From Diadema antillarum (taxonomy: Eukaryota), in contig NW_027271164.1 of assembly GCF_040938485.1 (NCBI RefSeq), positions 310,001 through 374,000 of the forward strand: a DNA stretch of 64,000 nucleotides. The letters are read 5' to 3'. Numbering within the stretch: the stretch's first letter is position 1; each line of letters begins with the position of its first letter. The notes beneath the pieces were generated by a model. It was not told where the DNA came from and did no database searches. It saw nothing but the letters and a program-made list of their open reading frames with translations. The translations under genes and the position numbers were made by a program. This document shows positions 14,866 through 56,430 of this stretch, in pieces.

Positions 14866-15029
14866 GCTTTCCAGACTGTGAAGTCGTCTGCCACTTTCTC
14901 GCTGAAGCTGGTGAGCTACTCCAATCTTGCAAATCGGGAACTAGACGGCGACTGCTGTGACACAGTGTGGTTGTGTAGAATTGACAAGTGCGACCCCAGA
15001 TTTAACATCTGCCTTCATCGTCAGGGCAG
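14866..15029 (+). CDS. Gene 1 exon: C2/MNNL domain part 1
   Basis: caccag|GCT...GGCAG|gtaaga; [54 protein letters not shown]. The F.LKL..Y.N...DG.CCD..C..F.ICL pattern matches the N-terminus of DSL ligands. The 5' boundary could instead be 14811, 14820 or 14875. Confidence 0.85.
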
Positions 15030-16009
15030 GTAAGAGTAAACATGGGTACAACAGAAGAGCGTCTTCAAATTCGGTTTCTAAAGTAACACAGTTCCATGAC
15101 TGACTAGCGATGATTCCCGACCAGGGCTTTCTTTGTTTTCATTTCCCACTGAATTCAGTTTAAGAATGTCTTGTCTCAAAGTTTTAGCGCAGGCATTTAG
15201 TGCTATGATTTGCTTATTATGTTATGTATCAGAGAGTATGCATTGTACTGCTGATATTTTCCTGCTTGCAAGCTGTAGTTTCAGTTTAACGACGTGATTG
15301 TCCAGCTGCATAGAATGTGCCTTTCCCATTTATCATTGTTTTGCTTTTGCTTTTCTTGAAGCAAGTATTTCTCCTGCTTTCAACGCATTAGAAACCGGCG
15401 TGCTGGAATAACCTTAAAAACTGCGCAGAAGCAAAGAAGCGTACAGAAAACAACAACTATTTTGTAGAGTCATGATTTGAGCGATCGCCGTTGCCATTGT
15501 CCCTGTTCTTCCAAATTGATTATCAGTAATCATGTACTCCTCAAAAAGTTTGAAGCAGTGCCACCTTGTCTCAGTAATAATGGAGACATGCTTTGGTAAC
15601 CACAGGAAGATTGTTAAAATCTTTGTAAAATTATATCCTGTCCGTTATGATTATATATGGCTTACATGAAGATGAAGTGCTTTAGATTTTGGGGTGTGGT
15701 CAAAATTGAAAAGTTGCAACAATGACCCAAGCTTGGTAAGTCCTCATTTTTCCCTCGTTGATGAGTGAGTTTTCCAATGTCTCTTTAATAATTGTTATGC
15801 ATTCTAACATCGGCGTTGAGGTAGAAACGTGTGCATAAGTAAACAAATAAACATGCATGTATGGGCATTAAAAAACAGGACTTCAGCCATCTAATGTAAC
15901 AGAACCGTCACCACATTAACACACCAAATCCGTAAACAAATTACTGGCAGGGTCTTGATTTGCTTGGATTTTCATTGTTACTGTCACAGGGATAGATATA
16001 GATTATATA

Positions 16010-16057
<48 letters not shown>

Positions 16058-19000
16058 ATGAACAGATAACAGATAACAGGTGTACCATTGAATCAATGAA
16101 TCACATCCTATGTTATGGATCGTCACCGTTTATATTTTGGCGGCTTTCTCTCTCGCAGTTCTAACAGCATGACGGCATGTGACCACGGTCGTATCACTAC
16201 TGGTTTGGTGCAGGACAACGGACAGTCCTTCTCCTTCCCCGCTGTACTACCCACCAATATTGCAAATCCCATTCGGCGACAGCTACAGAGATGGCAGGTA
16301 GGCCGATGCTTTTCACAGTCCCAGTATTATAGTGGATAATTTTAGTCCAGCGGAAGAATGGTGTATACTAAGTGACACGTCATTTGCTCCTGCGAAAATA
16401 GTGCTTGCCCCGGTCTTGTTTTCTCCAAGAACTTACGTTTAGGGTTACGATTGCGATAGGGTTTTAGGTTTTGTTTGATGTGAGGATTAGGAATAGGGTT
16501 AGGGTTATGTTTGGAGGTAGGTTTCATGTTTGGCTTAACGTGCAGATATTTCATTGGAGCAATCGAATGGGAACAAAATGACAAGGAACCGGTATGTACA
16601 TGTATTGGGTAAGGTTCACGGTTCAGTCCTGCCAAGAGCGGACATCTTTCGACACAATGATGCACCCCCTGTGTCCCTCATTACCCATTTGTGCTGTCTG
16701 TGACATTGACAAGGCCATCTGGTAGAAATTAATAAAGTAAATATTCTTCAAAAGCCAAGAATGTTCATGAATCTGTATTCGCAATACTTACCTATGTGAT
16801 GTATATATAACCTATACTGACTGCATGATACGATAGATCATAGATTGTCACGTGTTCTCTTAAAGTAATCACATCTTGTTTCCTATAGGGTGGTATAAGA
16901 GTGAAAATCGAGATTTGGGACGTGGACCCGAACGCAGACGACAAGATCGATTTCTACGCTGCAAACTTGAGAATGGCGCCCGCACGCGATGAGGCGAGCG
17001 CGGTTCCCATCCGCACCACGCTGTCCAGTACCAGAGGATACTCTGCGTGAGTTCTTGCTTTCGATTCCTCTGATTTACAATCTTTAATACAGGGCTTCGT
17101 AAAGACAGAAAACAAATTTCAAGTCGGTATGAGACCGGATGACATCTCCACATAAAATCCATCTTACACATTTTCATATCTCACCTTCAATTTTCTGTTC
17201 CCTTTTGTACATCAACATGTCTACGCTTATTCGCTGCATTTCAGTTCTATTTGTTTTTCATCTTTTTGCACTTCGTTTTCTGACGAATGCAATTGCAGCT
17301 GAATCTAAGATAATACATTGTAGTTTCACTCTTGATATGATTCTCACGTTGTTGTTTTCGTCAGTGAGTTATAGATGCTATTCTTGGTCATCTCTCTCCA
17401 TTGGCCAGAATGACACGACATGTCTTGTTATGGCACGTGCTTCTTTTGTTTTCTCCACCGCAGAACCATCATTGAGACCAAAGTGTTTTGCAATCCACAC
17501 TACTACGGCAGTGACTGCACCCGATTCTGCAGGCCGAATAACGGGCCGGGTGGACATTATTCCTGCAGCCCTCTAGGACGAAAGATATGTCACGCAGGCT
17601 ACACGGGACTCAACTGTGATGTGGTAAACACGCACATCAAATAAACTTTAAGCCCGCTGCACACTATACGACTCACGACTATACGAATGACAGACTTTGG
17701 ATCCGAAATAAATCACGTAGTCTCAGAATAAACGCGCCTATTTATTTCAGATCCAAATCTGTCTGTCGTATAGCCATGGGTCGTAGTGTGCGATGGGCTT
17801 TACAATGAGGGTGTCGCCGAATCGGATCGCAATCCAAACAAAGCATACCAAGAAAGAAAGAAGAAAGAAAAGAGAGATTTGCAGAAACTTGTTGGTGATC
17901 CTAGGAGAAATTTTCACGTTAGTCCCTAACAATCATCATGAACATGCAGTACTGCATTCAATTCGTGGTTCAAATCATATTCGCAGATTCGAGCAGTGAC
18001 TGGTAATTGCAGCTTCTCCTTTGAAGGCAATGGCAAGCACGCCACGAGACTATTAAGACAATGCAAAGATATATGGATTACTTTTAAACCTCATGGCTTA
18101 ATCCCTGTGCCTGTATAGTGAGAAGTAAAAATATCAATTGCCATCTTAAAAACGAACTTTAAAAAAACCAAACAAACTTAGAAAGCCATGCTTACAATTT
18201 CTGTTGCCTTTAGAGATGAAAGTAATGATAATGGTGATGATGATGATGATGATGATTACATTAGTTATAGAGAGATGATCATGTTGATGCAGGAGTGTAA
18301 ACTCTGACTGCAATCTTGCTTTTTAAAAGGTGCAAAATTAATAAATCCTTGCTTCGAGTTGCTTTATTGCAACTTATTGACAAATTGCCCTTTATGGACG
18401 AAAATTTGTTATCATGACCACTACTCTGACACTAACTAACCGTGGCTTATTTACATCGATGAAGGGTAATTTGTCAATCAGTTGCAATAACAACTGTTAT
18501 GATTGTTTTCAACGTCCTGCATGTCACCCTACCCCTCCCAAACCTATCTACTGTCCTACATAGCTGAAAAGATTTCAGACAAAGATGTAAACATTTCCCA
18601 TTCACAACTCTTCCATGATCTACTGCTGTTAAATATCAGGACTACGTGGCACCGGCAAATCAGTGCAGTAGCTGTGTCTATGTAACGTTAAAGTTTCCAA
18701 AACGACCGAAGCCGAATAGCCATATCTTTCACTTACGCAATTATTAAAGGAAAGATACAACAACAGCTGGTGAGAGGTAATATAAGATCACTCTGGTCTA
18801 TATGGTAATGGCAAGCACCTTTTCAGGTATAGCGTTACAAATGATTACTAGTACATCCCACTCACATGTTGCTTGATATATGACCCAAACACTGAAGACG
18901 TGAAGTATCATATCCCCTAACTTTGCGCGTGGAGACCAACATAAGATCACGCGATGTATTGTAAACTCTTTATCACCCTAAGAAGTCTGTGACTGGGTAA

Positions 19001-22000
19001 ATGTACTTTCGTTTATCTGGGTCACCGTTATCGCCAGAGTTCCACATTCATGCCTACTTTTGTTAGTCGAAAATAAATGGCATCAGGTGACGAGACCGGT
19101 ATAGGGCAAACCACCTACTTAATCTATGGAGTTAATCGAAGCTCGTTCGTCTGTTTTGATGCCAGCAGTGTTTCGTGACAACAAAAACAGGCATTGTTCA
19201 AATAGTGAAATGCTCATGAATGTAAAGAAAATGAAATTTGATTCATCAATCAAAGTCTGATTTCTCTTTCGGGAAAATCCTTTTCATCGATTAAAAAAAA
19301 GACTTTACTTCAAACGGTGATATTTTGTAACACCTTCATGTAGCTTTGCAGGAAGAGTTGGGAATATTTCAGCGGCTTACAGCATGGTTCAATTTCTCAT
19401 TTCTAGACTAGGGAAACACAAGACCCAAGCGTAAATGTATTACACAGAAAACTGGTTGTTAAGAATTGTAGGATGGGGAGGTACCATTGCTTCGGGGTTT
19501 TTTTTTCCTTATAGATGTATCAAGATATTCATGGACGCTTATAAGACTTGCGCTAGAACGAATGTACTGGTTTCGTAGATAACTTGGGAGCTGAAGAGAC
19601 ACATTCATAACTCCAAAGGGTGTTTTCTAAGACAACATAATGTCATAAAGAGACACAAAAGTATAAAAACGGGCTGCTGCAATTTATCTTGTTTTTTTTT
19701 TGGGGGGGGGGGGGGCAAATCGTTGACGAAGAGGGGGCTTTGTACAGGTGGATGGTTTGTGTTTGCTGCTGAATCATCGGTTTTTTTTTTTGTATACATA
19801 CAAATCTTTTTGTAAATGAACGTAAGTTGTGTGACCATTATGTCTTAGGACGACAGTGGAGTTAGAATCAAGACTGTTGTTTCCAATTACTGTCGTCAGC
19901 ATGTGCTTTACCATCTTGCTAACACTTCGATACTCTCCTTAAAACATGGGAAAGGGAGAGATCATAATGAACAAAGCGTCATTTCTTAATCCGTGCTACC
20001 GATATATGGAAATTTTAGTGTCAGAAACTTTACGTAAAATGATGTATGATGTCGTTTGATGAAATAGTTTGAAGATATTCATTGAGTCAGAAATCAATAA
20101 TGGCTGTTTTGATTTGTTGTCTGTGTTTCTGTGTCAGGAAATTAATGAGTGCGCATCAGGACCTTGCCAAAATGGAGGATCTTGTTCTGACATCATCAAT
20201 GGATACACATGTGAATGCGTGCAGGGAATACAAGGTAAATATCTCGTCTCATATCAATGTACAACACGTAATCAAAAACGAGTTCTTAAAGACATGGAGT
20301 CATGGGGATTTGTGCAATGGGGAGGCTGGCCTGATTCGGATATATTCGAGAATACCCGTAGCGAATTGTGTGTAGCGTTATCACTGATATCTATGTAAGT
20401 ACACACACAGCCGAAGAATCTCGACTGTAGTCGAACGTTACCGATGTGCGTACGCTTCGATTCACATATTCGCTGACGGGCAAGCAAGCTGCGTTATTTG
20501 TAGTTTGAAAGTGTGCGTATTTAAGCAGCAATGAAGATCTATTGAATTGGACCACCTTCTCTCTCCACGCTTCCGGGCCTTTAAATTCTTGTCTGCTTTG
20601 TCCTCCATGTTTAGAAGGGGTAACGGCGAAACTTTATGTGCAATATTCGTCACGAAACAGTCACTACGAGCAAATGTAAGAAATATATTTTTGAATTCTT
20701 TTTAAAGGAATGAGTGATTAAATGGGTATGTTCTGTATCAATAGTTTCGAGAAGTCTCAGCTAATCAGATGAATGACAAATATACATGTTCGATCTCTTG
20801 TGCTGAAGAGTGATCATGGAATGACCCAAATTAGTGTTTGATTGTCCACAAAATCGAACGCATAGAGTAGTATGATGCGAATGACTATTCGGCAAATGAA
20901 TGTTGATTTTACCCTAGTGTTGTATCATATTTCTCTTTTATACACTGTGAATTTGTTTCAGGTCTAAATTGTGAAATCAACATAGATGAGTGCGCGCCCT
21001 CACCGTGTCAGAACTCTGGATCATGCACAGATCTGATTGGAAACTACTCATGTTCTTGTCTTGCTGGCTTTGAGGGGACAAATTGCGAAGTCAACGTCGA
21101 TGAATGCGGTAGCGACCCTTGTGTTAATGGAGCGACCTGCCTTGATGCCATCGACGGCTTCACCTGTGTGTGCGTTGATGGGTTTGAGGGTGCTCTCTGT
21201 GAGGTGAACAGGGACGAGTGCCTCAGCAACCCGTGCACGGCTAATCATACTTGTATTGACGGCGTGAATGGTTATCAGTGTGAATGTTCAGCAGGCTTTG
21301 AGGGTGTTCACTGCGAGCTAGAGATCAACGAATGCAGCAGCCGACCTTGCTTGCATGATGGCGTCTGCACCAGCCTGATCGGCAGCTTTGTTTGCAGTTG
21401 CCAGGATGGTTATAACGGAACTCTTTGCGAAGTGAATGTAGATGAGTGTGAGAGCGGCCCGTGTTTAAACAATGGAACCTGCTCCGATCTCGTGAACGCG
21501 TACAACTGTAGCTGCCAGCCTGGTTTCTCGGGACCAGATTGTGAAACAAATATCGACGAATGCCAGAGCAGTCCCTGCAACAATGACCACACGTGCGTTG
21601 ACGGCATTAATGGTTATGTCTGCCTGTGCTCCTCTGGCTTTACGGGAATACACTGTGAAGTGAATGTGAACGAGTGTCAGAGTGCACCATGCTTCAACAA
21701 CGCCACCTGTGTAGACGGCATCAATGGCTTTATTTGCGAATGTTCTCCTGGATTCGAAGGTACCCTGTGTAACACTGATATCAATGAATGCGTGAGCAAC
21801 CCTTGCCAAAATGGACACACATGCGTGGACGCTGTTAATGGCTATCATTGCCCCTGTAGGCCGGGATACTCCGGAGCCCACTGTGAAGTTAATATTGACG
21901 ATTGTTCGCCTGAACCATGTCTTAATGGAGGAACCTGTGAGGATCTCGTCAATGGATTTTCTTGTCACTGTAGGGTAGGATTTGAAGGCCCCCTGTGCCA

Positions 22001-25000
22001 AGTCAACATCGACGAGTGTCACAGTGATCCCTGTATGAACAACGGGATTTGCCAGGATCAAATCGCGGCATACCTGTGTCTGTGTCCTGACGGTTTCCAA
22101 GGTGAACGATGCCAATCAGAGATCAACGAATGCGAGAGTCAGCCCTGCTTGAATGGCGCCACTTGCATAGATAGAATTAATGGCTATGATTGCGCCTGCC
22201 CGTATGGTTTTACTGGATCTGTCTGTGAAATCAATGTTGATGAATGCCATAGTGCGCCATGTTTGAATAACGGAACTTGTCAAGATGGTATTGCTCAGTT
22301 CACATGCAGGTGCCAGCTGGGTTTTGATGGTGACTTGTGTGAACAGAACATCAACGAGTGTGCGAGCAGACCTTGCCAAAATGACGGCAGTTGTACCGAC
22401 GGTGTGAACGGATTCCGTTGCGACTGTGATCCAGGATTTGACGGAGAGGTCTGCCAAAACAACATTAACGAATGCGGTAGCAATCCCTGTTTAAATGGGG
22501 CGTATTGCATTGACGAGATCGACGGATACGTCTGCTCATGCGCAAGTGGTTACTATGGGATCCATTGCGAGGTAGACCATGACGAGTGCGCCAGTAAACC
22601 ATGTCTTCATAATGGTACTTGTGTCGATTTCGTAGATGGATTCCGATGTCGCTGCACTCGTGGCTTTGGAGGAATGTATTGTGAGTCTAATCTGGACGAA
22701 TGCAGTAGTTCTCCCTGCTTGAATAATGGTACGTGCCAAGATGGAATTGCGGGTTTCGTATGCATGTGTTCAGCAGGATACGACGGCGACTTCTGCGAAA
22801 ATGACATTGATGACTGCCTGCTAGAGCCGTGTTTCAACAATGCAACGTGTACTGACATGGTCAATGATTATCACTGCGAATGCTCGCCGGGGTACACCGG
22901 TAAGAACTGTTCGATAAATGTAAACGAATGCGCAAGTAATCCCTGTCAGAATGATGCTAAATGTGTAGATGGCATAGACGGATATCTGTGTCTTTGTAGA
23001 CCTGGTTTCGAGGGTATTAAGTGTGAGACTGATACCAATGAATGCGCAGTTTGGCCATGTCAGAATGGAGCCACTTGCCAAGATCTTGTGAATGACTTTA
23101 GGTGCTCTTGCCCCCTTGGTTTTGAGGGAAAATCTTGCGAAGTGAACATCGACGAATGTGCGGGAAATCTTTGTCTGAACATGGCCACGTGCATTGACGG
23201 CACAGCGTCGTTTTCCTGCGTCTGTGCAGATGGGTATTTCGGGAGACGCTGCGAGAATGACGTCAATGAATGTGAGGAAAACCCATGTCCGCCTGAACGT
23301 CCTCATTGTGTCAACCTACCAGGGACCTTTCGATGCACAGAGCTGCCGACCTCCACGCCGATGTCACTATGTGCTGCAGATTTTTGCCAGAATGGGGCTT
23401 CGTGCAGTCAACAGGGTCACGAAGTTAGGTAAACTACTCCCTTGGTATTATCTTATCACAAATTGTTGTTGTTGTGGGAAATCGCCCCCGGGTTATTTTA
23501 AAATTATCATATTACTTCACGATCATCATCATGACAAACCATCATGAAGGAGATGTTGTTAATGAAATCTGTGATTGAAAACCTTTCTTGAAGTAATTTC
23601 ACTCAGGATACATAATAATATTTGTGGACTAATATCGCAATTTCATAACCGAATATCTCACTACAGCACGCTTCAGCAATTCTAAAGGTTCTCTCGAATA
23701 ACTTTCTCGATTGTAGTATCTGCGCCTGTAGCGTAGCCAGTAACAACAAGTTCAAATTGTTCTGATCGAAGTTATAAACTCAATTGTCAGATTTAGCAGA
23801 AATCTTATAAACGTCGTCTTGCAAGTTTTGAAATCTCGAGTTTGTTTGTGGTGTAGATGCACATGTCCAGCAGACTTTACGGGTGCCCGATGTGAAAGCC
23901 CACTCAGAGGGCCCTGCCACCCTTCACCCTGTGTTAATGGTGTCTGCGAGCTGGACACCGCTGGCCCTTCACCGGCAGCACGATGCATCTGTCAAGAAAA
24001 CTTCGTAGGCACCTTGTGTGACGTCGGTGAGTGTTAACTTACATCTGACTGCACACCATATATTAATGTGTCTTCTTTCAACAGTCTTGCAGCTACTTAA
24101 GTAGGCTATAACTCCACAGTTAATTCCACGATAACTCATAATTTATTGTTTGTCACTTTTGTTACCCGGTCGAAGAGTAAAACACAGACTTCAGACGTAT
24201 AGGTAGCAAGATTTGCCGATCAGTGGTAATGGTATAATCGTCTTTATTTTGATGGTAATCCCTATACTAAGCAAAAGGCTAAGTGTATGAGACTATTTTC
24301 CCGTTTCATTGACGTACTAATCTGACTTTTTAAAGGTTAATTTAGTTTTCCTATTCGTTTTTTCAGTCACACACTCACACAAATACATACATACACGCAA
24401 AATTTCTGCCTGTCTGTTTTATACATATCTTCAACCATTTGCCTTCGACATTATCTACAAACCAACAGACCCAAGCAAACACGTTTTCTCTCTGACTCTG
24501 GCTGAGCACACCACTCCCTCGGGTGATCTGGAGTACGAAATCTCTCAGCTTCTGCTATCCACCATGGACATCCGGGACCCGGAGAGTCTGAAGGTGGTCT
24601 TCCAGAAGGCCCAGTACGGCGAGTCTCAGCTCAGCGGGTAAGCCGTTGCATTGAGACTTGGCATAGGGTTTGATTGGAAATCACGTTACAACTCTGCGTA
24701 GTCTCTCCATGTAGTGCTCACACTTTTTTCCCCCACGGCCTTAGCATTATTATCACCACAACACTGATTGGTAATCATGCCTTCATATAGTCAAGGAGGT
24801 CATGGGGAATTTAGCCCAGGAATTGTGCACACGGGGGAGGAAATCTGACCTCTTCTGGTTAAGCGTCAACAGATATTATACTGTACGCACCAGAGGTGAT
24901 CTATGGAAAAAAACAGAAAAACTAACTCCAAATTCAATCAATTAGGTGTACGCTCATGTAAATGTCAACTTAATTATATTCTTACTTTCTATGAACACCT

Positions 25001-26313: not shown

Positions 26314-26357
<44 letters not shown>

Positions 26358-28285: not shown

Positions 28286-28558
28286 CGTTTGTAAAACTGT
28301 CACACATTCCGGGGCGAATGCAAGACCTTGAACTGTGTTATGTATAGAGATAATGAATATAATGCATCTTTAGTGATACTCCATAGATATGCAAATATTT
28401 TCTGTTCGTTTGCCCTACATTCTTGGTGTCAATGTCAGCTTCTGTATGAAATACAGTAGGTGTGTCCGGGACGACTCATTACGAAGATAACGTGCTGTCA
28501 GACTGATCCAAAACTATATCCGACATCGACGCTTCTTCGCTTTGTCAAAACGTGGATT

Positions 28559-28596
<38 letters not shown>

Positions 28597-29500: not shown

Positions 29501-29657
29501 NNNNNNNNNNNNNNNNNNNNNNNNNNNNNNNNNNNNNNNNNNNNNNNNNNNNNNNNNNNNNNNNNNNNNNNNNNNNNNNNNNNNNNNNNNNNNNNNNNNN
29601 NNNNNNNNNNNNNNNNNNNNNNNNNNNNNNNNNNNNNNNNNNNNNNNNNNNNNNNNN
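29501..29657. other. Assembly gap (N run)
   Basis: Ns. Confidence 1.
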
Positions 29658-33748: not shown

Positions 33749-33792
33749 AAACAAACAAACAAACAAACAAACAAACAAACAAACAAACAAAC
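33749..33792. repeat. (AAAC)n microsatellite
   Basis: Direct reading. Confidence 0.95.
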
Positions 33793-40235: not shown

Positions 40236-40273
<38 letters not shown>

Positions 40274-44287: not shown

Positions 44288-44339
<52 letters not shown>

Positions 44340-47300
44340 GCAAAACCATGGCTGTTTTTATCGCTATCGTTTGTTTAATTAACTAATTTGCATATGACCT
44401 GGTAATTGCCACAACAATCTCCATTCCTTTTAAACACATAAAAGTTGAACTTTCATCCTTGCCCAGGTTTGGCAAAACCCCCTGCTATTCCTGCTCTATT
44501 GGTCATTTCTTTCTTTTCTTTTCTTCTTTTTTTCTTGCTGGTTAATTTATTCATTATCAATCTGACGTGTTTAATTCTTAAATTTCTGTCCGTGTTATCA
44601 TTACGAAATCATACTGAACAGAGTAATATCCAAATATTGGAGTAGTTTCCATAAAGAGGACATCCCAAAGATCTCGTGCTTGTGCCATAATCATCGTTTT
44701 AACGTTTCAATTGCAACAATCGGTATCAGTCTTAACTCACTGGTTTAGTTTCTACTCTGTAAGACAAATTTGCTCTTGAGTAAGTTCACTATAATCTGGT
44801 AAAACCGAATTATACAACTGATCGATTCTTAGCCACAGGTTGTCTTAATGATAATCAAACAAAATATGCTTCTTTTTAAAAAAATTAAATTAGAACTTAG
44901 ATTCTCAAAAGTTTTGCTTCTATGTCTATAATACAAGGATCTTGGAAGAAAATTATGTTATGGTCGTTACATACTCCTTGAACGTATCCAACACCCACAT
45001 GACTGGAAGGAAAAATAACCCCCAACTTGTACTTCTTTGTTTAGTAAATATCGAGATACATATCTCATGCGGGTCATGTAATATATTTTGAGTTTTCTCT
45101 CCACACAATCATGTCGCTTTTCTCGGGACGTTATCAGCAACAACAGTCATACTATACTATGCACAATTCAGTGTATGTTTTGGCACATCTTACTCTAATT
45201 TCAAACATTTTTCAATACCCAGAGCGTACTAGCCTTTTTACAAAAAACTCCCATGGTGTTTTTTTTTTTCCACTGACAGTCGTGAGTAAAGAGCTGGTAA
45301 AGAGTTGAAGCCAAGAGTGTTCGCTGGTCTTGGCTCTTAACTGTCGCTGGTGGTTTGAATAGACCGATCCTCTCTTTGCTTGTTCAACTTGCAATCATGA
45401 CATCGAAGGGGCCTTTGACAAGGCTAGTAACACACTTGAAAAGTACAGGCAAGGGTAAAGTTTTGCTTAGAAATATAATCAAACATACCAAACACATTGC
45501 GAGATATATTTTGTTGAATATAAGTCCAGTGGGCAGAAGTGAAGGGATTATAATAAGTTTCATGTCTTCTGCTCAAATGAGATGAAAAAAGAAAACAACA
45601 ACAAATGAAACGCAGTTGATGCATCTGTTAATAAACGCAACTGCGTAGTGGTTGAGTCATGCAGAGCAAATACTTCGACTATACAACTTCACAATGAGTG
45701 TACTGTATAATCCTTATACTTGGACATTGTTTTAATGAGGTAATGTGTTTTCATGAACTTTGTGATTGCTGGGGCTCAAGTAAGCTGACCACAAAACTTA
45801 TCGATTGATGAAAATAGTCAATGCAAAGTCAGATAGAAGGATATGTGACGCTTTCAGTGTTGCTGAAGAGTATGGTTAAGTATTAGGGAATATTTCTGGA
45901 AACGAACCGTGGTGAGTCATTTCTTACACTTCCTCAAGCAATAACCAAGAGGTTACCAAAACTCTTTTCAATGCTCTAAATCCGGGACAGAGGTGACAAA
46001 AGGTCTGAACTCTGTGCCATCAAGTTCCCGCATTATCCTTCCTTCTGCCAGATCCCGCTATTCTACGCCCCCCCCCCCATGGTTACATTTCGAATGGTTA
46101 CATTCGTATGTCAGAGCATTATGGTAGTATGGGACATCATACTATTAAAACGAAAAAACAAACAAACTAGCAAGCAACAGGTGCATGTGTGTTCAAAAAT
46201 ATCATTATATTTGTATGCATCGTAGGTGCGTAATGGATTGGTGTGGTGACGTATTAAATGAATGAACGAATAAATTGATGAATTAATACGACCAAATAAT
46301 AATCTAACATAAATAAACACATTCCATCATTCTTTCTGTCACCTCCGTTATCAAGTGAGTCAATATCGGTTTTTAGTGACCGTTGAAACATCGACGTCAT
46401 AATTATCTTTCATGACATCATTGAATCGATATTGTTTCATCTCTTGTCGTCTCTTGGTTGACAGGCACTGGGAAGGGTTGAGATATCCTACAAGCTCAAA
46501 CACTACGAGAACCTGGGCCACATCGAGCTGGACGGGGGTTGCTGCGATCTCTTCTGCGGCAGCTGCGACAACCGGTTCAATCTCTGCTTCGACCAGTACC
46601 GTGGGTGAGCAAGTCCAAGCGCGCCATCTCGCGGTGATATTACCCTGGTGCCCGGGGGCTTTCCTAACTTGAATCTTGTTTCAACATGTACACAGTGGTA
46701 TGATTTCAGTGGTTTGATTTTAGAGCTTTCCAAGGTACCAAGTGCGGATGCGGCGCCTTGCCGAAATGCATATAAATGTATATGTATTAAAAATTGTAGA
46801 AAATCACTCTCGAATAGCATGATGACATGGCAATAATGTAAAAACATGTGCCCCGGGTTGGTTGTGGGATGCTTTAGCTCTCTACACAACGCATATATGG
46901 GCTGTCTGAAAAAAAAAAAAAAAAAACAACCAGCAAGTTTCACCATAAATCTTGTTTTTAAAATGTTTACACCCCTTGTCCTTCATTTACTAACACCGAG
47001 AGCATGGACATACTTATACACGTACACACAGTAGGCCTACACACTTATACCGTTCCCACTCATTTCCGAAGCACACCCGTACAGATATTTTACGTGATAT
47101 GTATACGTGCACATTAAAAAAATTAGGCACTACAAGCCATCACCTCCATCCCCACCATGTTTTCGATTTTTGTTTCTCTCGTAAGATCCATGTAGCATTT
47201 CATATCTTTCATGTTATTGCAATGTTATACAGCAACAATGACGTCGCAGACTGCGACTATGGAAACTATGAGACGGATCGCTTGTACGAGAACAACGATA

Positions 47301-50300
47301 ATTTCAACTTCCCGACTTCCTTGTCATCTTCCGTCTCGAACCCGATCGTTTTTACCATCAATTCGTTTTCGGTAAGTCTGTCAACTGTAAAACCAGACAT
47401 GTTTGTGTGCATAAAACTTTCGCGAATTTCGTGAGGAGACAAGATCCGCGAGAGAAAATTACGTGATTAAGATCCTTAGTAATAAAGCTTTTGTCCATGC
47501 ACAATTTACAGAATTCCAGTCGCCGATTCGCGAAAGTTTCATGCCGCGAAAAAGGCCGTCGGCTGGTTTTACCATATGTCACGGAGTAACCGCCAACCTT
47601 TCTTCATGCTTTGAACGCTCTGGTTAATGGATTATCGTTGGATAAAGTACCTGCTTTGATATCTGAGGTCGTTTTTAATGACGTCAGCGTTAACATTGCA
47701 ATAAAAAAAAAGTCCGAGTCGAGCCCTCTAAACTAACTTGGTATAGACCCTATCATTATTATGGTTTAATGTTTGTTTGTTTGTTGGTTGTTTGACTAAT
47801 ATATCACGATTTTGATGAGTTTAGTAAAACGTCAAAGATATTTGTGGTTTAAACTTTTTCTGTCTCTTGATGATTTCCATAACATGAAAATGCTGTGTAT
47901 AAACTGTATAGTGACTGATAGGTTTTATGGCTCAGAAGAGTTGTCATGTCGACAATGTGCAAGAAGACAATTAGAATCTACTGTAGAATTCTGGAAAATT
48001 TGTGATGACGAAACGATAATTCCATTGCAAAAAAAAAAAAAAAAATCTCGCATTGAACATGTAGAATGATAGACACATAGACCAGATGACTAGACAAAGG
48101 CCTTTTTATGAATTTGTGTTTTTCTAAGCCCTTTTTTGTTGCTTTATGTTGCTGCAATTGAGTTTAATGTTTTCCTTCTTGTGAGATTTGTCGAAACGCA
48201 ACCCTCACAAATATACTTTATATTATTTACCCATTTTTTTTTTTAATAATTGAAAGTTTTTGAGAAAATGAACAAAACACTGATGATATGTATAGTAAAC
48301 CACCAACGTCAAATGATATCACCAACCCCAAACAGAACGGTTTCCGATCAAAAATCGAAGTATGGGACTATGACCCGGGCAACAGCGATGATAAGATCGA
48401 TTACTTCGGCTACAACTACAGAATATCACCGGACAGGACAGCCGCCCTCGCCTCAGCCCATGCGGTGACACTCACTGGTGCCGGAGAGGCTACGTAAGTA
48501 TTCCTTCCCCCACCTCCCTCCCTCCCCCCTCGACTCGCTCTGTCTGTCTGTCTTATTGTCTATCCATCTGTACATCTATCTGTAATATATAATAGTCCAT
48601 ACCAAATTTTGACTGTGTCGATTGCCAGCATTATAGATCAATCACTGTTTCGGGGGGGGGGGGGGGGGGGCGTAAACAGCCAGCCTGTATACTTCAGTTT
48701 CAACAAGACTATAATTATTTTTCTACGCTTTGTGTGAAGGAAACAGGGAAGAAGCAATGAAAGGGAGAGGCACTGAGATCGGAACCTACTATATCATTTC
48801 CTTTCACAGGACAAATGCTTAGAGGACCCTGTATATACCATGACGACACCAACAACGTTATTAACACTGCTACCAGTCCACTACTTTTGTCATTGCTACA
48901 ACAACTACAATCGCAGTCGCCATCAAAATAATTCCCCCCGTATGACTTGAATTTTAGATGTTTTATTTTTTCGCATTAGCTTACTATACACTTCGTGTAT
49001 GTTTATGTAAAAAAAAAAAGCAGCGAGAATTGTTCGTCCCTTCCCTTACACCACACTTGCTGGGGAAAATGCTATACTTCCACCTTCACAATGACCACTT
49101 ACGTTCCAATGACACAATTGTTCAGTACAAAATATACTACTTATAGAAATATGGACCGACATATACATACATGGACTATTAACGGAGGTCTTTTTTTGAT
49201 CCCATCATCACCGCCGCCACCTGATTATGTACATGTTAATAAGTTCATTCAGAAGTTTGGACAATGACGATTGTGTAATCGTGCGTCGTCACTGACAAAA
49301 GAATCGTTTCTCTCATTTTGGTCTTATTTCACTGAGGGGCTTTTTCAGACTCAACTGCCTTTGAATAAACATCAATGATGGGGAGCAGCAAACCTAAATA
49401 CATGACAAATTTTGTGTCACAAATAGATTGATAATTACTGAAGTGGACACTGTCTTGTGGACACGCATGTAACGTTGCTTAATGGTAAAACATAACATGT
49501 CGTCTGCCGTTACTGTCCATGTTTACTCTGAAAAAATGTGCGAAAATTGGGGAAAATAGATTACAAACCACAATCAATCTGCCAAAATATTTGCTTTCTC
49601 TTGTAAAGTACGTGGATTTCGAAAACGAAACTTCTTGAGAGATGATTTACCAATACACACTACAACTGCACATGCATTTTTTTTCATGATTTACAAGAGT
49701 TATTATCTTCTGCGTATGTGGTTCTTAGATTTCTCAAAGCGCCGTCTTGATTTTATCCAGACTGACTGTCGGCGGTGATGGTAAGATCAATGCAGGATCA
49801 TTTTTGACAAAAATAGATGCATGAATTAAATAACGAATGATGAATGTCCATGTGCAGTAGGTACATGCTAGAAACAAACGCATACTGCAGTATTTCCGTT
49901 AGAACGTTAGAACATCAATCTATACACTTTCTTAAGTCTTCTGATTATTCTGCAACAACCTCAAAGGAATATCTGCCCAGTAGGCCCTATAAATAAAAAC
50001 AAACTGTCATTTGGTTTTCTTTGTACTGGACATGTTGAGAATTATTGTGTCATTCGCTTGTAAATTGCAGAATGACTGTGGAGGTGAAAGTGTACTGCGC
50101 CCAACATTATTACGGAACCTCGTCAGGGTGTGACGTGTACTGCGTTGCCAGGGACGACGTTGTTGGGCATTATGACTGCAATGACGTCACAGGGGCCAAA
50201 ATGTGCCACGATGGTTGGACAGGGACAGACTGCAATGTGGTAAGTTTTACGCTGTGACATTTATCCGGCATTACAACCTTCACGATATCGTCAGTCGATA

Positions 50301-53300
50301 ATATCGAAATGAAAATCATATCGTCTTCTTCATACATTTTGTACAAAATTAATACTGGGTTAATTTTTCCTGTAGGTTCTATACTACCCTGAGATTTAGA
50401 CTTCATTAAAATTGTGCTTATCATGCTGTAATCGACAATTATTGCCACAAATTCATGGTGTTAGTGTCGACATGAGACCAAACAATACATTGTATTTGCA
50501 ATCCGTTCATCCATGAGGTAATGTCGCGTATAATTGTCGAGTTCTTGTGCTCATTATTGTAGGAGTATAGTGTGTATAACATGCATGACTAGCCAATCAT
50601 CAGATTGATTGGGCAGAACAAATACTTGGAGGTTACTCCTGAATTCAGTCGTTCATTTTGCATCTACTGTTAATTTGGTTCACACCAGTCGATAAAGTTG
50701 ACGTGGTAACGCCTGTATGCGCAATGGTTAACTCCATAAAGCTTTGAAGCTATTTTGACCCCTTCCACGCGGGGTGGGGGGGGGGGGGGGGGACAGCACG
50801 GTAAATTTTACTATTTGATACGGTTGAAAATTCTCGAGGTCCACACATGGGGGCGTTTTTCGTTACAATAAAAAGGAATATATGATTCCTATGATGTATT
50901 GTCTGGGATTGTTTGCAGATAGATAATCATAAACAATGATACTACCGGTAAAACTCGTGAGAAAGATTCAAAATGACACTAAATAAAATCTTCGGAAAGT
51001 ACTGTATTTTTAATTATTTCTGTTACGTCTATTGCTTGATGCCTTTGTCACATGAAAAAATAAAGGAAATAATAAGACCATTTCAGCATCATTCACAACA
51101 GTAATTACTTCCTTATTCTTGTTCTCAGCAAATTACAGCCGAGAAAACCCAATTTCATCCACTTTTTTCAACTGAAATTTGAACAGAAAAACATGCAAAA
51201 TCTGATTGTCAGTTGGTTGTCAGTTTATGGTTGTCATGGCAACCAGCAATATCGGACATAGCTATATTATATATAATAATGTTTGCAATAAAATTCTACG
51301 AAAAGTTACCAAATTTGGTTGAAATAACAGTTAAAGGGCGTGGGAGTGGCAATTGGAAATAATGGTGGGGCACAATGTGCCCCTTTGAGCTTTATAGAGT
51401 CAGTACAATGCATGCATGAGATACCTTACACAAGGCCCCAACACAGGGTAACAGGTCTTCACCCGCTGAAAACACACAAACAAACGAACACGCACGCACG
51501 CGCGCACACACATAAATCATACACACACAAAGACACACACGCACACGCACACACACATACGCACGCAGAGGCACGCACGCACGTGTAAGCCTTCGATTTA
51601 CCTTTTTAATGTGATTGTATGCAGGAAATCAATGAGTGCGATTCGAACCCATGCTTGAACGGTGGGAGCTGCAACGACCTCTTGGCTGACTATTCATGCA
51701 ACTGTCCGGCGGGAACACAAGGTAAGATTGTGTCGATGCGATACGAAACGAATATGCTCGACATTGATTTTTGCTTATATGTATGAGGTATTATAGACTG
51801 CACAAAATGTTGGTATGATCATGAGTTCTCTATGCCTCTATGACGATGACTGGAATGAGAGGAAAATGATCTTGGATTAGGATGGTGTCAATGCAAATCA
51901 TCTTACCTTTCGAAAACTCTGAAACGCTATCACATTCCCAAAAGAACACTGTCATGACAATATTTGGATAATCGGAAAAACCACAACAGTCTAGGTACTT
52001 TTAAGGACCTGCCTTTAACTACAATGAATTGCACTTAATGTTTATTTTGGCCCTCAGCAGGGGAGGTATGTTGAACACAGTGATTAGAATTCCTGCTTGT
52101 TATGATTGATTTACAGGAAAAAACTGTCTGAACATCGATGAATGTGCTTCTTCGCCATGTGAACACGGTGGTACGTGCCAAGATTTCATAAACTACTTCA
52201 CTTGCGTTTGCGCTCAAGACTACAGCGGCGTAACCTGTCAGTTTGAGATCGATTACTGCGATCCGAATCCTTGCCTCAATGGAGCAACTTGTCTCGGACT
52301 GGACGACGATCGCGTAATCGAGTGTCAATGTGCACCCGGATACACTGGGGGAAATTGCTCTCTCGACATTGACGAATGTGCCAGTGACCCTTGTTTGAAT
52401 AATGGAACATGTGTCGACCAGGTAAATGGCTACAACTGTTCTTGTCCCGCTGGGTTTATTGGGACACATTGCGAATCAGATGTCCGCAATGAGTGCGAAT
52501 CGAATCCTTGTCAAAACAACGCGTCATGCGTTGACCAAGTAGGTGGATACGTGTGTGTCTGTATGGCTGGCTTCGCTGACGACCATTGCAATGAAGATAT
52601 AGATGAGTGCTCTCCGAATCCTTGCGTGTTCGGCAATTGTTCGGATAAAGTCAATAAGTACATTTGCGAGTGCGACCCGGGATACGCTGGTGTCAACTGT
52701 ACAGAGAACGTTGACGATTGTGATCCGAATCAATGTCAGCACAACTCATCTTGCGTCGATGGAATCAATAATTTCACCTGCTCTTGCTCTCCGGGCTTCT
52801 TTGGACGTTTCTGCGAGATCGACATCGACGAGTGTGCCAGCGCGCCATGCCAACACGGTGGACGGTGCGAAACCCCAGCAGTGAACGACTTCAGGTGCCA
52901 TTGCTCTGGGACGGGTTATACCGGGCTGCTGTGCCAAGAGGATGTGAACGAATGCGACTTTGACTTTGCATGTCCACCGGAGACTACCTGTGTCAACACG
53001 AATGGAAGCTATTCGTGCTCTCAGCCAGAGGGAACCACACCTTTGCCAGGACTGTGCCGCTCCAATATCTGCTACAATGGAGGCACCTGCATGATCGTCA
53101 ATGACACATATCAGTTAGTATTGATTTTCACTTTTATTTTATCCTGATGATGCTTAAATCAGAAAGAAGATAATTATACAAACTTACCCTTTATTCATGG
53201 CCATGAAGCCTTTTCTTTGCTTGACATAATCATTATTAGAAGATGATGCCAAGCAGGGTGAGAATGTCCTACACAGTCAAATTGACTAGGTGTAACAGGG

Positions 53301-56300
53301 AATATTTAAGACGGAATTTAAACGAGAGTCCGTTATGGGCGGTTTAATTGTTCTGGTTTGGCTGTTACGGTTCCAAAGGATGGGGGTAATGACTGAAAAA
53401 CGCGATTGCCCTACACTTTGTATCAGGTCGTTGTGCGATGTCCAGGAAAACGTTGACCAGTGACACAGGCAGAGGTACGCCTAAGATTTTTATGAATTTG
53501 GATCGCAAGGATTCAGGATTATGTCAGTATCGTTGTGCTAGGTTGTGCATGATTCTGGAGAGGAGAATATGAATTTTGAGTACGATAAGTTGTTAAATAT
53601 AGGAAGCCCGTGGAGGGATTTGAGAAGGGGTAGTCACATTCTCTTTTGTATGGGTTGAAAAGGGGAGCAGTTTCATTTCGTCGCAAAGGGGAAGATGTTT
53701 AGTATACAGGAGTCAAGATTGGGGAACTTTTTTTCTCCGTCTATCTGTTGTTTGTGAACAAAAATCTATATTCGACTTTCTGTCAACTATGATTCACAGG
53801 TGCTTGTGTAACAACGACTTTAAAGGGGAACTGTGTCAGACACCGACTGAGCCATGTTCTCCCAACCCCTGCCAGAATGGAGGGCTCTGTGAAGTACTGG
53901 TGGCTGGCAACGGTACAGTAAGCTATGAGTGCACATGTCTGACTGGTTACTTCGGAGTCAACTGCACACAGAGTAAGTAGACTCAACCATTAGCTCTCTA
54001 TTACTTATCACACTCACCAAGCTTGCAGACGGAGGCGACCTATACTAAAACATCCATGCCCATTTATGACAGCAGAGAGTGAAGGAAAAATGTTTCCATT
54101 ATTAATTGTACGACAATGGCATGTCTAGAGGTCTTTGTAAGTGGACTGTTGTGATCCTCAGTATTGCAAAAAATGGTTTCTTTAATATGTAATAATTACC
54201 GAGCATTGATCATAGAGGGGTATACATCCCGTACTCTCCCTCTCACCCCTCCCACTTCAGACCTATCCCAGAAAGCATCTCTAATCCAACAGCGCTTGTG
54301 AGAAAAAAACAACAACTGAAAACAAGAGAACAAAACAGAGACATCCCTAAAAACAGTAAGGTTGAAAATAAAAGGTGCGAGAAAAAAAAAATTATCATTT
54401 GATAGATATGAATTCTGCCAACAAAGAAAGTGAATACTCGAGTACAATTTTAGAGGTGTGAGCTGAAAATTAAGTGAGAGATGATTCCTACTAATGTAGA
54501 AACGCATCCTTTGTGAAATGATTACCTGTTTGTGTTGTCGATTGAAAATTTTTGTGTACAGATAGTATGCAATTCAAATTAGTTCGTATAATCCGTCATG
54601 TCTCCAATATTGTTTAAAACTTTTGGTAAGACACACATACACGCACAGACACACACAGACACACATACACACACTACAAAGACAAGCAAACGAACAAACA
54701 GATCAAAGTATTAATGAATGGGAATACAGTCCGCAATATCAAACCGTAATTATTTCTCTCCAAATGAATATATCTTTCTCATTTTTGTTCGACAGGTGCT
54801 GTCGTATCTCCGGGACCGCAGTCGGTAAGTTGATTTTGCAATTCTGTCTTATCATAGCTCGGTGCTTTTATTATTATCATTATTATTGTTATTCAATAAA
54901 ACGTTTTTTATCGAATTATTATTTTTGAAACGCTTTCATAGCATGTGTAAATAGATGATCGTAATATTCACTTTTATTTCGCTTTATTCCAGTCGGCACC
55001 CATATGGATCAGTGCTCCCATTTTGCTACTGATCATCGTTATCATCCTCGTGTTGGCATTGTTCATCTACATAGTGAGAAGGTAAGCTCTTCTGCATGCT
55101 TATTTTTTTCTGTTCGTTTTATGCCTTCGCAAATTATACGAATTTGATATGCATTAAACGCTGTGCCATGAAAGCTGATATTTTCAAAACAATATAATGC
55201 CAGGTTGCCCATTTACGTTTCTTCCAAGATTCTCAAGCATGGATATCATGCAATTACGGAACGGTTCAGAAAATAATTATACATTACGGAAAACCGAAAA
55301 AAAAAAAAGAGACATGGCTTATCCTGACGTCCGACAGTTGCTATCCCCACAAAGCTAAGCCTTTTAGAAAATTATGTTGTTGTTGTTGTTGTTTTTTCAG
55401 GAACAGGAAGAAAGATCGGTTGGTAAACTCGCCTGTAGTGCTAGCTAACCCTCATGCCGATACGGTGGTCCTTCCCGGAATGAGCTCTCCCGAGGCCCCG
55501 CCCTTGCCCCCTAAGGGAAAACTCGGCCAACCCGATGGGTCTGTGGTCTTTACCAACAATCTGTACAGTGATATGGACATTGAATCGCGTGGGGCTTGTG
55601 CCCTTCCACCGTTACCTCCTCCGTACACAGTATCTGAAAATAGTGACTACCATGGCATTGAAAATCCCTATGCAGAGGGAAACTACATGGGAACTGATCC
55701 ACTTAAGGCTAGCAGTGGGTCAACAAAAGAACCGCGAAGTCAAGCAGTTGAGAACGATTACGAAATGGCGCCCGACCTCTTTCACTCTGAGCAAGGCCCT
55801 AGGGTGCAGAATGAGTACACGATGGACCCAGCGGCCGCTCCTGTTCATGCTCCAGATGGACCCTACTCAACAAAGATCTTCCCCGGAAAGGATGACTCAG
55901 AACAGAGGGCACAACCCAATGTGAGACCACTGTCCATCTCTCTTGATCCTCCAGCTACCAACCCAGAAAATGATTACGTTCTTCCTTCTTCCCCTGCCAA
56001 ATCCCAATCCCCTTCTACCCCTGCTAGCCCTTACTCAACTGCCATCTATGCTCAAAAGGCTGACGAACCGTCACCATATTCTGGTTCTGCGGACCCGTAC
56101 TCCACCAAAATATTCCAAGGCAGTGACGCATCTCAACCGACCACTCCGGTGAGCCCCCAGTCACCAACGTCTCCCAACAGTGATCATACCTCAACCATCT
56201 CTACTCCCAATAATGACTATGCTTACCCAACAGCATTCGATGCCAAGCCAGATGAGGTCTCCACCCCTCCAGCAAATCACTACGCACAGCCTACCATACC

Positions 56301-56430
56301 ACCTGTACCACACTCACCAAAGGCTGATGGTCCCAGTGAGAACGTGTACTCCAATACCTCTCGTCCTGGAAGCTATTCCAAACTCCCGTCTGTCCCCGAT
56401 GCCTCTCTCGATACGGCTGATGACAACTAG
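35929..56430 (+). CDS. Gene 2: Notch-ligand-like (C2/MNNL-DSL-EGF) type I membrane protein with a long Tyr/Pro-rich cytoplasmic tail; complete 11-exon model, 1022 aa
   Basis: Exons: 35929-35976, 46465-46604, 47233-47371, 48336-48493, 50071-50239, 51625-51721, 52117-53113, 53800-53972, 54796-54824, 54993-55081, 55401-56430. All introns are GT-AG with phases 0,2,0,2,0,1,2,1,0,2. Total 3069 nt in frame from ATG to TAG. Paralogous to gene 1. Confidence 0.92.
39428..40042. mobile_element. Non-autonomous DNA transposon (Kolobok-like foldback MITE) with TTAA TSD
   Basis: TTAA|AGGACAAGTTCACCTTCATAAACATAAGGATTGAG ... CTCAATCCTTATGTTTATGAAGGTGAACTTGTCCT|TTAA. The arms are complementary over about 200 nt. 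TTAA TSD plus AGG termini fit Kolobok. Confidence 0.85.
40235..40271. repeat. (GTCT)n microsatellite
   Basis: Direct reading. Confidence 0.9.
41802..42331. mobile_element. MITE with CACTG-type TIRs and arrayed subterminal GGTGTTAA/TTAACACC motifs (CACTA/EnSpm-like)
   Basis: Left CACTGCAAAAAGTCCGGTGTTAAAT versus reverse complement of right TACTGTAAAAACATCGGTGTTAGAT. More than 10 internal copies of the motif in both orientations. No clean TSD. Confidence 0.7.
44289..44335. repeat. (CA)n microsatellite
   Basis: Direct reading. Confidence 0.95.
46465..46604 (+). CDS. Gene 2 exon: C2/MNNL part 1
   Basis: tgacag|GCA...CGTGG|gtgagc; [47 protein letters not shown]. This frame is absent from the ORF track. 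Confidence 0.88.
47233..47371 (+). CDS. Gene 2 exon: C2/MNNL part 2
   Basis: atacag|C...TTTTCG|gtaagt; [46 protein letters not shown]. Confidence 0.9.
48336..48493 (+). CDS. Gene 2 exon: C2/MNNL part 3
   Basis: aaacag|AAC...GCTAC|gtaagt; [53 protein letters not shown]. Confidence 0.9.
50071..50239 (+). CDS. Gene 2 exon: DSL domain
   Basis: ttgcag|A...AATGTG|gtaagt; [56 protein letters not shown]. Confidence 0.92.
51625..51721 (+). CDS. Gene 2 exon: first cbEGF
   Basis: atgcag|GAA...CAAG|gtaaga; [33 protein letters not shown]. Confidence 0.92.
52117..53113 (+). CDS. Gene 2 large exon: 7 complete EGFs, one 4-Cys EGF, start of next EGF
   Basis: ttacag|GA...TATCA|gttagt; 997 nt open frame that extends ORF 52395-53147 upstream. 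Confidence 0.93.
53800..53972 (+). CDS. Gene 2 exon: end of split EGF plus last EGF
   Basis: tcacag|G...CAGA|gtaagt; [57 protein letters not shown]. Confidence 0.92.
54796..54824 (+). CDS. Gene 2 29-nt micro-exon: juxtamembrane stalk
   Basis: cgacag|GT...CAGTCG|gtaagt; [10 protein letters not shown]. It converts phase 1 to phase 0, as needed to join the TM exon. Confidence 0.8.
54993..55081 (+). CDS. Gene 2 exon: transmembrane helix
   Basis: ttccag|TCG...AGAAG|gtaagc; [30 protein letters not shown]. Confidence 0.9.
55401..56430 (+). CDS. Gene 2 terminal exon: 343-aa Tyr/Pro/Ser-rich cytoplasmic tail
   Basis: tttcag|GAACAGGAAG; NRKKDR followed by ORF 55420-56430. GC-elevated, coding-like sequence. 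Confidence 0.9.

Follow-up and report, generated by a model that had tools for sequence, protein, structure and literature searches.

Canonical Notch ligands (JAG1, JAG2, DLL1, DLL4, and Delta and Serrate of Drosophila) present a C2 (MNNL) domain, a DSL domain and a stalk of EGF repeats ahead of a single transmembrane (TM) segment, and carry an NNL tripeptide in their intracellular domains. DSL ligands without the DOS motif also exist, and may be active or inhibitory (PMC2504490); they include C. elegans LAG-2/APX-1, DLL4 and DLL3, the last of which sets the precedent of a divergent DSL protein with an inhibitory instead of an activating function, and the DSL-only ligands of the worm have been proposed to require separate DOS co-ligands. 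A looser category is formed by the 'Delta-like' or 'DSL-like' genes of spiralians and other invertebrates (Gazave et al. 2017, PMC5356439; Liu et al. 2021, PMC8166818), i.e. extra MNNL-DSL-EGF proteins of uncertain origin, expanded in lophotrochozoans, which are known in these phyla but were left unplaced, with no function given. Here we describe two genes, A and B, that belong to this same loose category and lie on the + strand of a 64,000-nucleotide (nt) stretch of Diadema antillarum contig NW_027271164.1 (positions 310,001 to 374,000; hereafter the window).

Like the canonical ligands, the predicted A and B proteins combine C2, DSL, an EGF stalk and a single TM segment, and B likewise has the NNL tripeptide. 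Unlike them, both are without the DOS motif, the Phe207 of the Notch-binding face, a VWC or cysteine-rich region and a PDZ-binding C-terminus, and A has a SEA-like juxtamembrane domain found in no canonical ligand of the set compared. A DSL domain without DOS is common to A, B, LAG-2/APX-1, DLL3 and DLL4, although the latter proteins have few EGFs and no SEA-like domain, and the likeness does not imply orthology. Whilst the published accounts define the 'Delta-like' group by what it lacks and leave it unplaced, the comparison made here yields a positive signature and places an echinoderm clade beside a spiralian one. We consider it probable, though well short of certain, that A and B are type I membrane proteins of the composition C2-DSL-cbEGFs-(SEA-like)-TM-Asn-Tyr tail (cbEGF, calcium-binding EGF), belonging to the echinoderm clade of a family also present in molluscs, annelids and a nemertean. 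Judged by its sequence, A retains the full family architecture, and B appears to be derived, an echinoid form in which the stalk is short and the tail motifs have multiplied.

The window is AT-rich (about 38% G+C) and contains three assembly gaps (7289-7432, 29501-29657 and 59098-59283). Gene models were assembled from two groups of cysteine-rich + strand open frames by scoring GT donors and AG acceptors, with frame continuity required. Gene A comprises 11 exons (14866-28285, +; 4002 nt in frame, 1333 amino acids (aa), TGA stop) and gene B 10 exons (46465-56430, +; 3021 nt in frame, 1006 aa, TAG stop), and the introns of both are GT-AG throughout. The features of the two models are as follows.

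14866-15029, +: gene A, first exon found, start of C2/MNNL (Pfam MNNL E 9.2e-7); opens at a splice acceptor
16159-16297, +: gene A, C2 exon, 139 nt (splice-site scan)
16889-17046, +: gene A, C2 exon, 158 nt (splice-site scan)
17464-17623, +: gene A, DSL exon (Pfam DSL E 3.4e-15)
20138-20234, +: gene A, EGF exon, 97 nt (Pfam EGF/hEGF/EGF_CA)
20962-23428, +: gene A, EGF exon, 2467 nt (Pfam EGF/hEGF/EGF_CA)
23857-24026, +: gene A, EGF exon, 170 nt (Pfam EGF/hEGF/EGF_CA)
24469-24637 and 25681-25855, +: gene A, SEA-like juxtamembrane module in two exons, 169 + 175 nt (hidden Markov model, HMM, from homologues)
26908-26999, +: gene A, TM exon (splicing model)
28075-28285, +: gene A, tail exon with TGA stop, FLNPAF and TNMYS in the tail (splicing model)
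46465-46604, +: gene B, first confirmed exon, C2 (spliced model; MNNL weak)
47233-47371, +: gene B, C2 exon, 139 nt (spliced model)
48336-48493, +: gene B, C2 exon, 158 nt (spliced model)
50071-50239, +: gene B, DSL exon, 169 nt (Pfam DSL E 9.1e-14)
51625-51721, +: gene B, EGF exon, 97 nt (Pfam, regular expression)
52117-53113, +: gene B, EGF exon, 997 nt (Pfam, regular expression)
53800-53972, +: gene B, EGF exon, 173 nt (Pfam, regular expression)
54796-54824, +: gene B, 29-nt micro-exon, predicted only (best-scoring AG...GT candidate of the required phase)
54993-55081, +: gene B, TM exon (splicing model)
55401-56430, +: gene B, tail exon with TAG stop (splicing model)

This independent splicing reproduced what an earlier, sequence-only reading of the locus had described, namely two + strand paralogues of C2-DSL-EGF-TM architecture with matching phases (corresponding exons start in phases 0, 2, 0, 2, 0, 1, 2, 1 and so on) and with exons of exactly 139, 158 and 97 nt in common. 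The EGF numbers given there, 23 for A and 10 for B, agree with regular-expression counts, by which about 20 of the 23 in A fit the calcium-binding consensus; the contrast drawn between a short and a long tail also stands, with the lengths recounted as 71 and 344 aa in place of 69 and 343. A gene start at 14866 has to be given up: the position is a splice acceptor, and the ATG/signal-peptide exon of gene A must lie upstream. Pfam, which had been proposed as a check and was applied to the separate exons, found MNNL (weak on B), DSL and EGF_CA and gave no match for SEA. The 139- and 158-nt exons of gene A join without gaps when aligned to sea-star, holothurian and transcript-derived relatives, and its 24469 acceptor is backed by a protein match to the sea-star CDVDLKQHGAVVF. 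The predicted micro-exon of gene B aligns with SAARTGNKGGGG of the Lytechinus orthologue and is phase-equivalent to the juxtamembrane exons of gene A (169 + 175 = 344 nt). That gene A might be a pseudogene is rejected in view of its 11 exons, its 4002 nt in frame and the intactness of all its cysteine patterns; when the remainder of the window was searched by tblastn with the A and B proteins, no further copy was detected.

Both predicted proteins run in the order C2(MNNL)-DSL-EGF-TM-tail. At 41.8% identity over C2+DSL they appear to be two old paralogues. Pfam MNNL matches the first exon of gene A with E 9.2e-7 (28.9 bits, the curated cut-off being 22.5) and the exons of gene B weakly (12.9 and 14 bits). 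The DSL exon of gene A matches Serrate, Jagged-2 and Jagged-1 in the PDB with E 2e-10 to 5e-9, and the DSL exons of both genes match the solved JAG1, JAG2, Serrate, Delta and DLL structures with E 1e-10 to 1e-6. An AlphaFold (AF2) model of residues 20-262 of the B orthologue, with a predicted local distance difference test score (pLDDT) of 88, matches JAG1, JAG2, Serrate, Delta, DLL4 and DLL1 with E 1e-16 to 1e-11, and the modelled head of the B lineage is in these terms a proper C2-DSL. What follows the head is different: in the alignment a calcium-binding EGF (xEINEC..PC.NGG.C) adjoins DSL in A and B, at the position taken in canonical ligands by the short-looped EGF1-2. Of 20 canonical sequences, 18 match the DOS consensus as published (PMC2504490), against none of the 79 relatives of A and B; it has no match in A, in B or in their echinoderm relatives. 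The Notch-binding face conserved in human Jagged1 consists of F199, R201, R203, D205 and F207 (PMC3415683). When aligned to the JAG1, JAG2 and Serrate structures, A has F, R, N, G and G at these positions, retaining F199 and R201, and B has Y, V, R, D and V, retaining R203 and D205, such that three of the five residues are substituted in each protein. Phe at position 207 is present in 15 of 19 canonical sequences, and is outside the six commonest residues among the 79 non-DOS sequences.

Placement was examined with a quick IQ-TREE tree of 140 C2-DSL regions, drawn from the 150 best matches to a family-biased profile. The canonical DOS clade of this tree (Shimodaira-Hasegawa-like approximate likelihood ratio test, SH-aLRT, 99) holds the Jagged sequences and two ATEV-ended Deltas; opposite it stands a large non-DOS group, within which an echinoderm clade (SH-aLRT 95) holds crinoid, sea-star, sea-cucumber and sea-urchin sequences plus A and B, with B grouped with Lytechinus and Diadema (SH-aLRT 97). 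Sea urchin Delta and Serrate are separate known genes in S. purpuratus (PMC10970066). On the best tree plus architecture, A and B would accordingly be neither Delta nor Serrate, and are better described as members of the echinoderm clade of a divergent Delta-like family, which bears out the earlier description of them as non-canonical DSL proteins.

When the C2-DSL region was used for an exhaustive profile search, 2362 proteins were recovered at E <= 0.001. Echinoderm non-DOS members were found in crinoids (Anneissia, Antedon), sea stars (Patiria, Asterias, Acanthaster), a holothurian and echinoids; elsewhere they were found in gastropods (Haliotis, Lymnaea, Aplysia, Batillaria, Bradybaena, Bulinus, Babylonia, Biomphalaria), bivalves (Solemya, Potamilus, Mytilus), annelids (Owenia, Paralvinella) and the nemertean Tubulanus. 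With this range, and with B orthologues across euechinoids, the sequence-only reading was mistaken in calling the pair lineage-specific. A word-index search with the sea-star C2-DSL region found four sea-star proteins only, and a profile search is needed to recover the full range. Members appear in databases under names such as 'Delta-like protein', 'fibropellin-1-like', 'jagged-1-like' and 'uncharacterized'. A literature search, including one by accession, found no functional description of a non-DOS Delta-like family, as the earlier reading had supposed, nor in the literature searched was the family signature (cbEGF after DSL, SEA-like module, N-x-Y tails) found described. Two members from the crinoid Anneissia japonica (P0145 and P0229/P0303) lie on one 947,859-bp contig and have neighbouring accession numbers, which suggests local tandem duplication in the family outside sea urchins too. 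In the Haliotis rubra 'fibropellin-1-like' protein (P0015), the C2 region at about residues 60-190 has an internal stretch of some 25 residues, DLSQCQYGRAVTGEVRDQDRITFRTDIG, that occurs twice; this looks like an assembly or annotation duplication.

The region of about 125 residues between the last EGF of A and its TM segment is 19-26% identical to the corresponding region of sea-star, crinoid and mollusc members. An HMM made from these homologues, with A excluded, matches A residues 1144-1213 (E 1.5e-6) and, within a set of 280 sequences, 27 other non-DOS members; in that set it matches no canonical ligand and no other EGF protein, and it matches neither B nor the B orthologues. The juxtamembrane module of A is homologous to that of sea-star and mollusc members, and the B lineage has lost it secondarily, with the 29-nt predicted micro-exon in its place. 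An AlphaFold model of the module of an Asterias member (P0079; pLDDT 89) shows a beta-alpha-beta-beta-alpha-beta arrangement followed by the TM helix. It matches KIAA1549 in Foldseek (E 1.5e-6), with the SEA+TM region of MUC1 also matched, and gives VIA-align Z scores, in a range where fold class alone is secure, of 8.7 for Nup54, 7.8-8.1 for PCDH15 MAD12, 7.1 for CDH23 MAD28, 6.6 for the membrane-proximal domain of phogrin and 5.5-5.7 for the MUC16 SEA domain. The SEA and SEA-like domains of these proteins (MUC1, MUC16, PCDH15 MAD12, CDH23 MAD28, phogrin, Nup54, KIAA1549) offer the same fold directly before the TM segment, and as a group are solved structures or annotated domains of the membrane-adjacent ferredoxin-like and SEA kinds; A differs from the SEA superfamily in two sequence marks, the Pfam profile and the G/SVVV cleavage motif, neither of which it shows. 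In detail, Pfam SEA matched neither the A exons nor the homologues even at E up to 5, no G/SVVV autoproteolysis motif is present in the module of A, and the Pfam KIAA1549 match to the module is weak (E 0.003-0.007). The term SEA-like, which the first reading had already applied to this module, is right for A at the level of the modelled fold.

The cytoplasmic tails provide the remaining element of the signature. Short-tailed family members carry motifs such as FENxLY, FQNPVY, ILNPLY, DNIYAEIP and ENPYSD. The tail of B, confirmed as long and tyrosine-rich, contains 18 Tyr in its 344 aa, with FTNNLY, about ten [DEQN]NxY motifs, three PYST(K/A)I(F/Y) repeats and one PPPY. In the 45 family tails, 39 of which carry it, there are 89 instances of N-x(1,2)-Y, against 27.9 +/- 4.6 after shuffling (maximum 41 in 300 shuffles); 18 canonical tails show no excess (8 against 9.5). 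Canonical ligands end in PDZ-type ATEV, DHCV or ELIV, whereas A ends in ESEQ and B in ADDN, and none of the family tails has a PDZ-type end; tail lysine is 4.6% in the family against 8.4% in canonical ligands. Blocks of the B tail are conserved in its Lytechinus, Strongylocentrotus and Diadema orthologues, although FTNNL/IY, with its NNL tripeptide, is kept in B, Lytechinus and Strongylocentrotus and not in the Diadema protein compared. No Pfam family matches the B tail. In the ESM Atlas it is nearest to the phosphotyrosine adaptors LIME1, PAG and SCIMP and to vaccinia A36, with scores of 0.81 or less that are to be taken as leads only. PPxY is a ligand of Nedd4-type WW domains, and NPxY/NxxY are ligands of PTB domains. 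The NNL/I/V tripeptide recurs in DSL-ligand tails, where it is a likely Mib1-docking element, and Delta with its intracellular domain swapped for the NPxY endocytosis signal of the LDL receptor is active (Daskalaki et al., PMC3241720). The receptor-like tail of B had been presented as a novelty; compared with its relatives, it is better regarded as an apparent expansion of an Asn-Tyr motif already present in A-type and spiralian short tails, and not as a new kind of tail.

Gene B has clear counterparts in other sea urchins. Its closest relatives are Lytechinus proteins named 'fibropellin-1-like', 65-69% identical over C2-DSL, of which L. variegatus XP_041459559.1 (972 aa) aligns with B from end to end in the same domain order, has a similar short stalk at the position of the micro-exon, and shares the tail blocks ANPHxD, APPLPPKxKL, FTNNLYxDxD, RGACAL, ENPYAxGxY, ENxYE and DGxYSTxIF. 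The gene for this orthologue has exons of 57, 152, 139, 158, 169, 997 and 171 nt, of which 139, 158, 169 and 997 are equal to those of gene B, and the length of 997 nt recurs in L. pictus; a scan of the L. variegatus gene did not recover an exon matching the 97-nt one. A search restricted to the tail added S. purpuratus XP_003728945.1, named 'fibropellin-1', and matched only the Lytechinus and S. purpuratus orthologues, with no detectable similarity to any other receptor family. Identity between the Lytechinus and Strongylocentrotus proteins is 73%; that of B is 52-53% to these and 47% to the Diadema protein, with which it has GACALPPxPPPY in common. These values place the source of the window among sea urchins outside the group formed by Lytechinus and Strongylocentrotus. 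With exon lengths and tail blocks kept in this way, gene B is an old, conserved euechinoid gene. For gene A, the 821-aa EGF exon used as a query matched nothing but generic proteins with EGF repeats (fibropellins, crumbs, Notch), and neither A itself nor an orthologue.

Two L. pictus models related to B merit mention in their own right. XP_063952926.1 has no counterpart of the first confirmed exon of gene B (46465-46604); tblastn located the missing exon at L004:6645-6797, 63% identical to B and 3.2 kb upstream of the annotated start, and the RefSeq model is therefore 5'-truncated. XP_054774538.1 (P0132, 497 aa) joins an unrelated N-terminus of 120 aa to a B-like C2-DSL and pieces of a B-type tail, with EGFs and TM absent; it stems either from mis-assembly of the model or from a second locus that is rearranged.

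Two further features concern the 5' ends of the genes and the sequence between them.

29501-29657, no strand: assembly gap (N run) between genes A and B, outside both coding sequences
35929-35976, +: candidate gene B exon 1, followed by gtatgt, unverified (highest score in 28.3-46.4 kb for an ATG with a hydrophobic stretch and a phase-0 donor)

Scans for signal-peptide exons gave no convincing candidate for gene A and one plausible candidate for gene B. For gene A, the gap at 7289-7432 may contain exon 1, or exon 1 may be situated beyond it. The counterpart of the candidate at 35929-35976 is the 57-nt exon 1 of L. variegatus, whose last residue is Q (phase 0) and which precedes exon 2 by 8.6 kb. 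The gap at 29501-29657 begins 1216 nt downstream of the gene A stop, beyond AATAAA/ATTAAA signals at 28860 and 29343, and lies 6.3 kb upstream of the candidate exon 1 and 16.8 kb upstream of the first confirmed exon of gene B; no reading frame crosses it. Since the gap separates A from B, the way they are ordered and oriented and how far apart they lie hang on a scaffold join that is unverified. Microsatellites ((TG)n, (CT)n and a tetranucleotide) occur at 26249-26378, 28540-28640 and 40200-40340, in gene A introns and the intergenic region, and both flanks of the gap are microsatellite-like, which may be its cause. In L. variegatus, L. pictus and D. setosum there are no A-like exons within 10 kb of the B orthologue.

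Several points weigh against the assignment of A and B to a separate, non-canonical family of C2-DSL-cbEGF membrane proteins. Constraining the tree to unite A and B with the canonical clade costs 45.7 log-likelihood units, and the constrained tree is not rejected (approximately unbiased, AU, test, p 0.09), so that of the C2+DSL phylogeny envisaged in the sequence-only reading one part stands, i.e. the position of A and B apart from Delta and Jagged in the best tree, and the canonical placement is left unrejected; their separation from Delta/Jagged consequently rests on the best tree plus architecture. That tree contains few canonical Deltas, the sequences being only the 150 best matches of the family-biased profile. 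The N-x(1,2)-Y counts include related sequences and carry no phylogenetic correction, and the SEA-like fold was modelled on a sea-star homologue 24% identical to A, and not on A. Gene A is without a close annotated orthologue, its nearest relative being an intron-free contig from run SRR32120646 that is 48% identical and looks transcript-derived, and both signal-peptide exons are within the window still candidates at best, and unconfirmed.

Amongst the alternatives, A and B could simply be ordinary activating Notch ligands, DSL-only in the manner of C. elegans LAG-2 or vertebrate DLL4, that provide tissue-specific capacity beside Delta and Serrate. The intact C2 and DSL domains with a predicted fold like that of JAG1 and DLL4, the existence of active DSL ligands without DOS (PMC2504490), the NNL kept in B together with the ability of NPxY-type endocytic signals to drive Delta activity (PMC3241720), and the compatibility of the AU test with a canonical placement all speak for this explanation. 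However, only two of the five Jagged1 face residues are kept in each protein, Phe207 is absent family-wide, there is no PDZ end and less lysine, and the juxtamembrane and tail architecture is different, and on this evidence we regard it as unlikely. The altered binding face may equally be taken to indicate that the proteins act independently of Notch, as adhesion or recognition receptors with a head that binds lipid or another EGF protein and a tail that signals through tyrosine kinases; SEA-like domains next to the membrane are typical of adhesion and mechanosensitive proteins (PCDH15, CDH23, mucins), and the B tail is Tyr- and Pro-rich with conserved blocks. Yet there is no known candidate for such a partner, and the head, better conserved than any other part outside the EGFs, still has Notch ligands as its best matches; such a role seems to us decidedly improbable.

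The sequence-only reading had itself proposed a functional pair in recognition, immunity or adhesion, in which A would be a long-reach, short-tailed ligand or decoy and B a short-reach, long-tailed signalling receptor. A and B are indeed same-strand scaffold neighbours with contrasting ectodomain and tail lengths, and the weak language-model likeness of the B tail to LIME1, PAG and SCIMP (at most 0.81, a lead only) points in the same direction. Nothing, however, links A to B functionally: their adjacency spans an assembly gap, the B orthologues of the three other urchins have no A-like exons within 10 kb, and the duplication is old, at 42% identity. Tandem duplication moreover seems a habit of the family, given the two crinoid members on one contig. 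The same 'ligand' head is present in both proteins and A-type short tails share the Asn-Tyr motifs of B, which makes the contrast between A and B one of degree, and we consider a ligand/receptor or decoy/signalling pair very improbable indeed.

For the family reading preferred here, i.e. a divergent Delta-like family with an echinoderm clade that includes A and B, the following mechanism can be envisaged. The C2-DSL head, held on a stiff cbEGF stalk, would bind, in cis or in trans, a receptor with EGF repeats, for which Notch or a Notch-like protein is the likeliest candidate. The altered Notch face would probably make binding weaker, such that modulators or context-specific ligands are more likely than main activators, and the latter role would be left to canonical Delta and Serrate. 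The tails, with NPxY/NxxY and [DE]NxY motifs and in B also PPxY and NNL, would support adaptor-driven endocytosis and possibly phosphotyrosine docking, with internalisation proceeding via Asn-Tyr/PPxY motifs instead of lysine ubiquitylation and PDZ scaffolds; B, with its tail motifs multiplied about ten-fold, would be the form likeliest to signal into its own cell. A more far-reaching proposal, which we put forward as speculation and think distinctly unlikely, is that the non-DOS family is an ancient, separate arm of Notch ligands in echinoderms and spiralians (unseen here in chordates and ecdysozoans) that signals bidirectionally in the manner of ephrin-B, with the head engaging a Notch or Notch-like receptor, a phosphorylated Asn-Tyr tail recruiting PTB/SH2 adaptors, a SEA-like module that is force-sensitive or sheddable, and B serving reverse signalling.

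The evolution of Notch ligands is usually framed as that of Delta plus Jagged, with stray 'Delta-like' genes left unplaceable; if the signature holds, many of these stray echinoderm and spiralian genes would form a coherent and testable third DSL class. The sea urchin embryo is tractable for the question of whether such proteins activate, inhibit or bypass Notch, and could show whether adaptor-driven endocytosis replaces ubiquitin-driven endocytosis in ligand function, with A and B offering a natural comparison of ancestral and derived forms within one genome.

Two minor observations concern the surroundings of the genes. Downstream of the Diadema setosum B orthologue are two phosphatidylethanolamine-binding protein (PBP) genes (L003:30643-37531); the 7.5 kb downstream of gene B in the window hold no open frame of at least 95 aa resembling PBP, although no PBP homology search was made. 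Upstream of gene A, an open frame of 271 aa (11946-12758, +) has a weak reverse-transcriptase match (Pfam RVT_1 E 0.022) and is probably a decayed fragment of a retrotransposon of the type without long terminal repeats (non-LTR).

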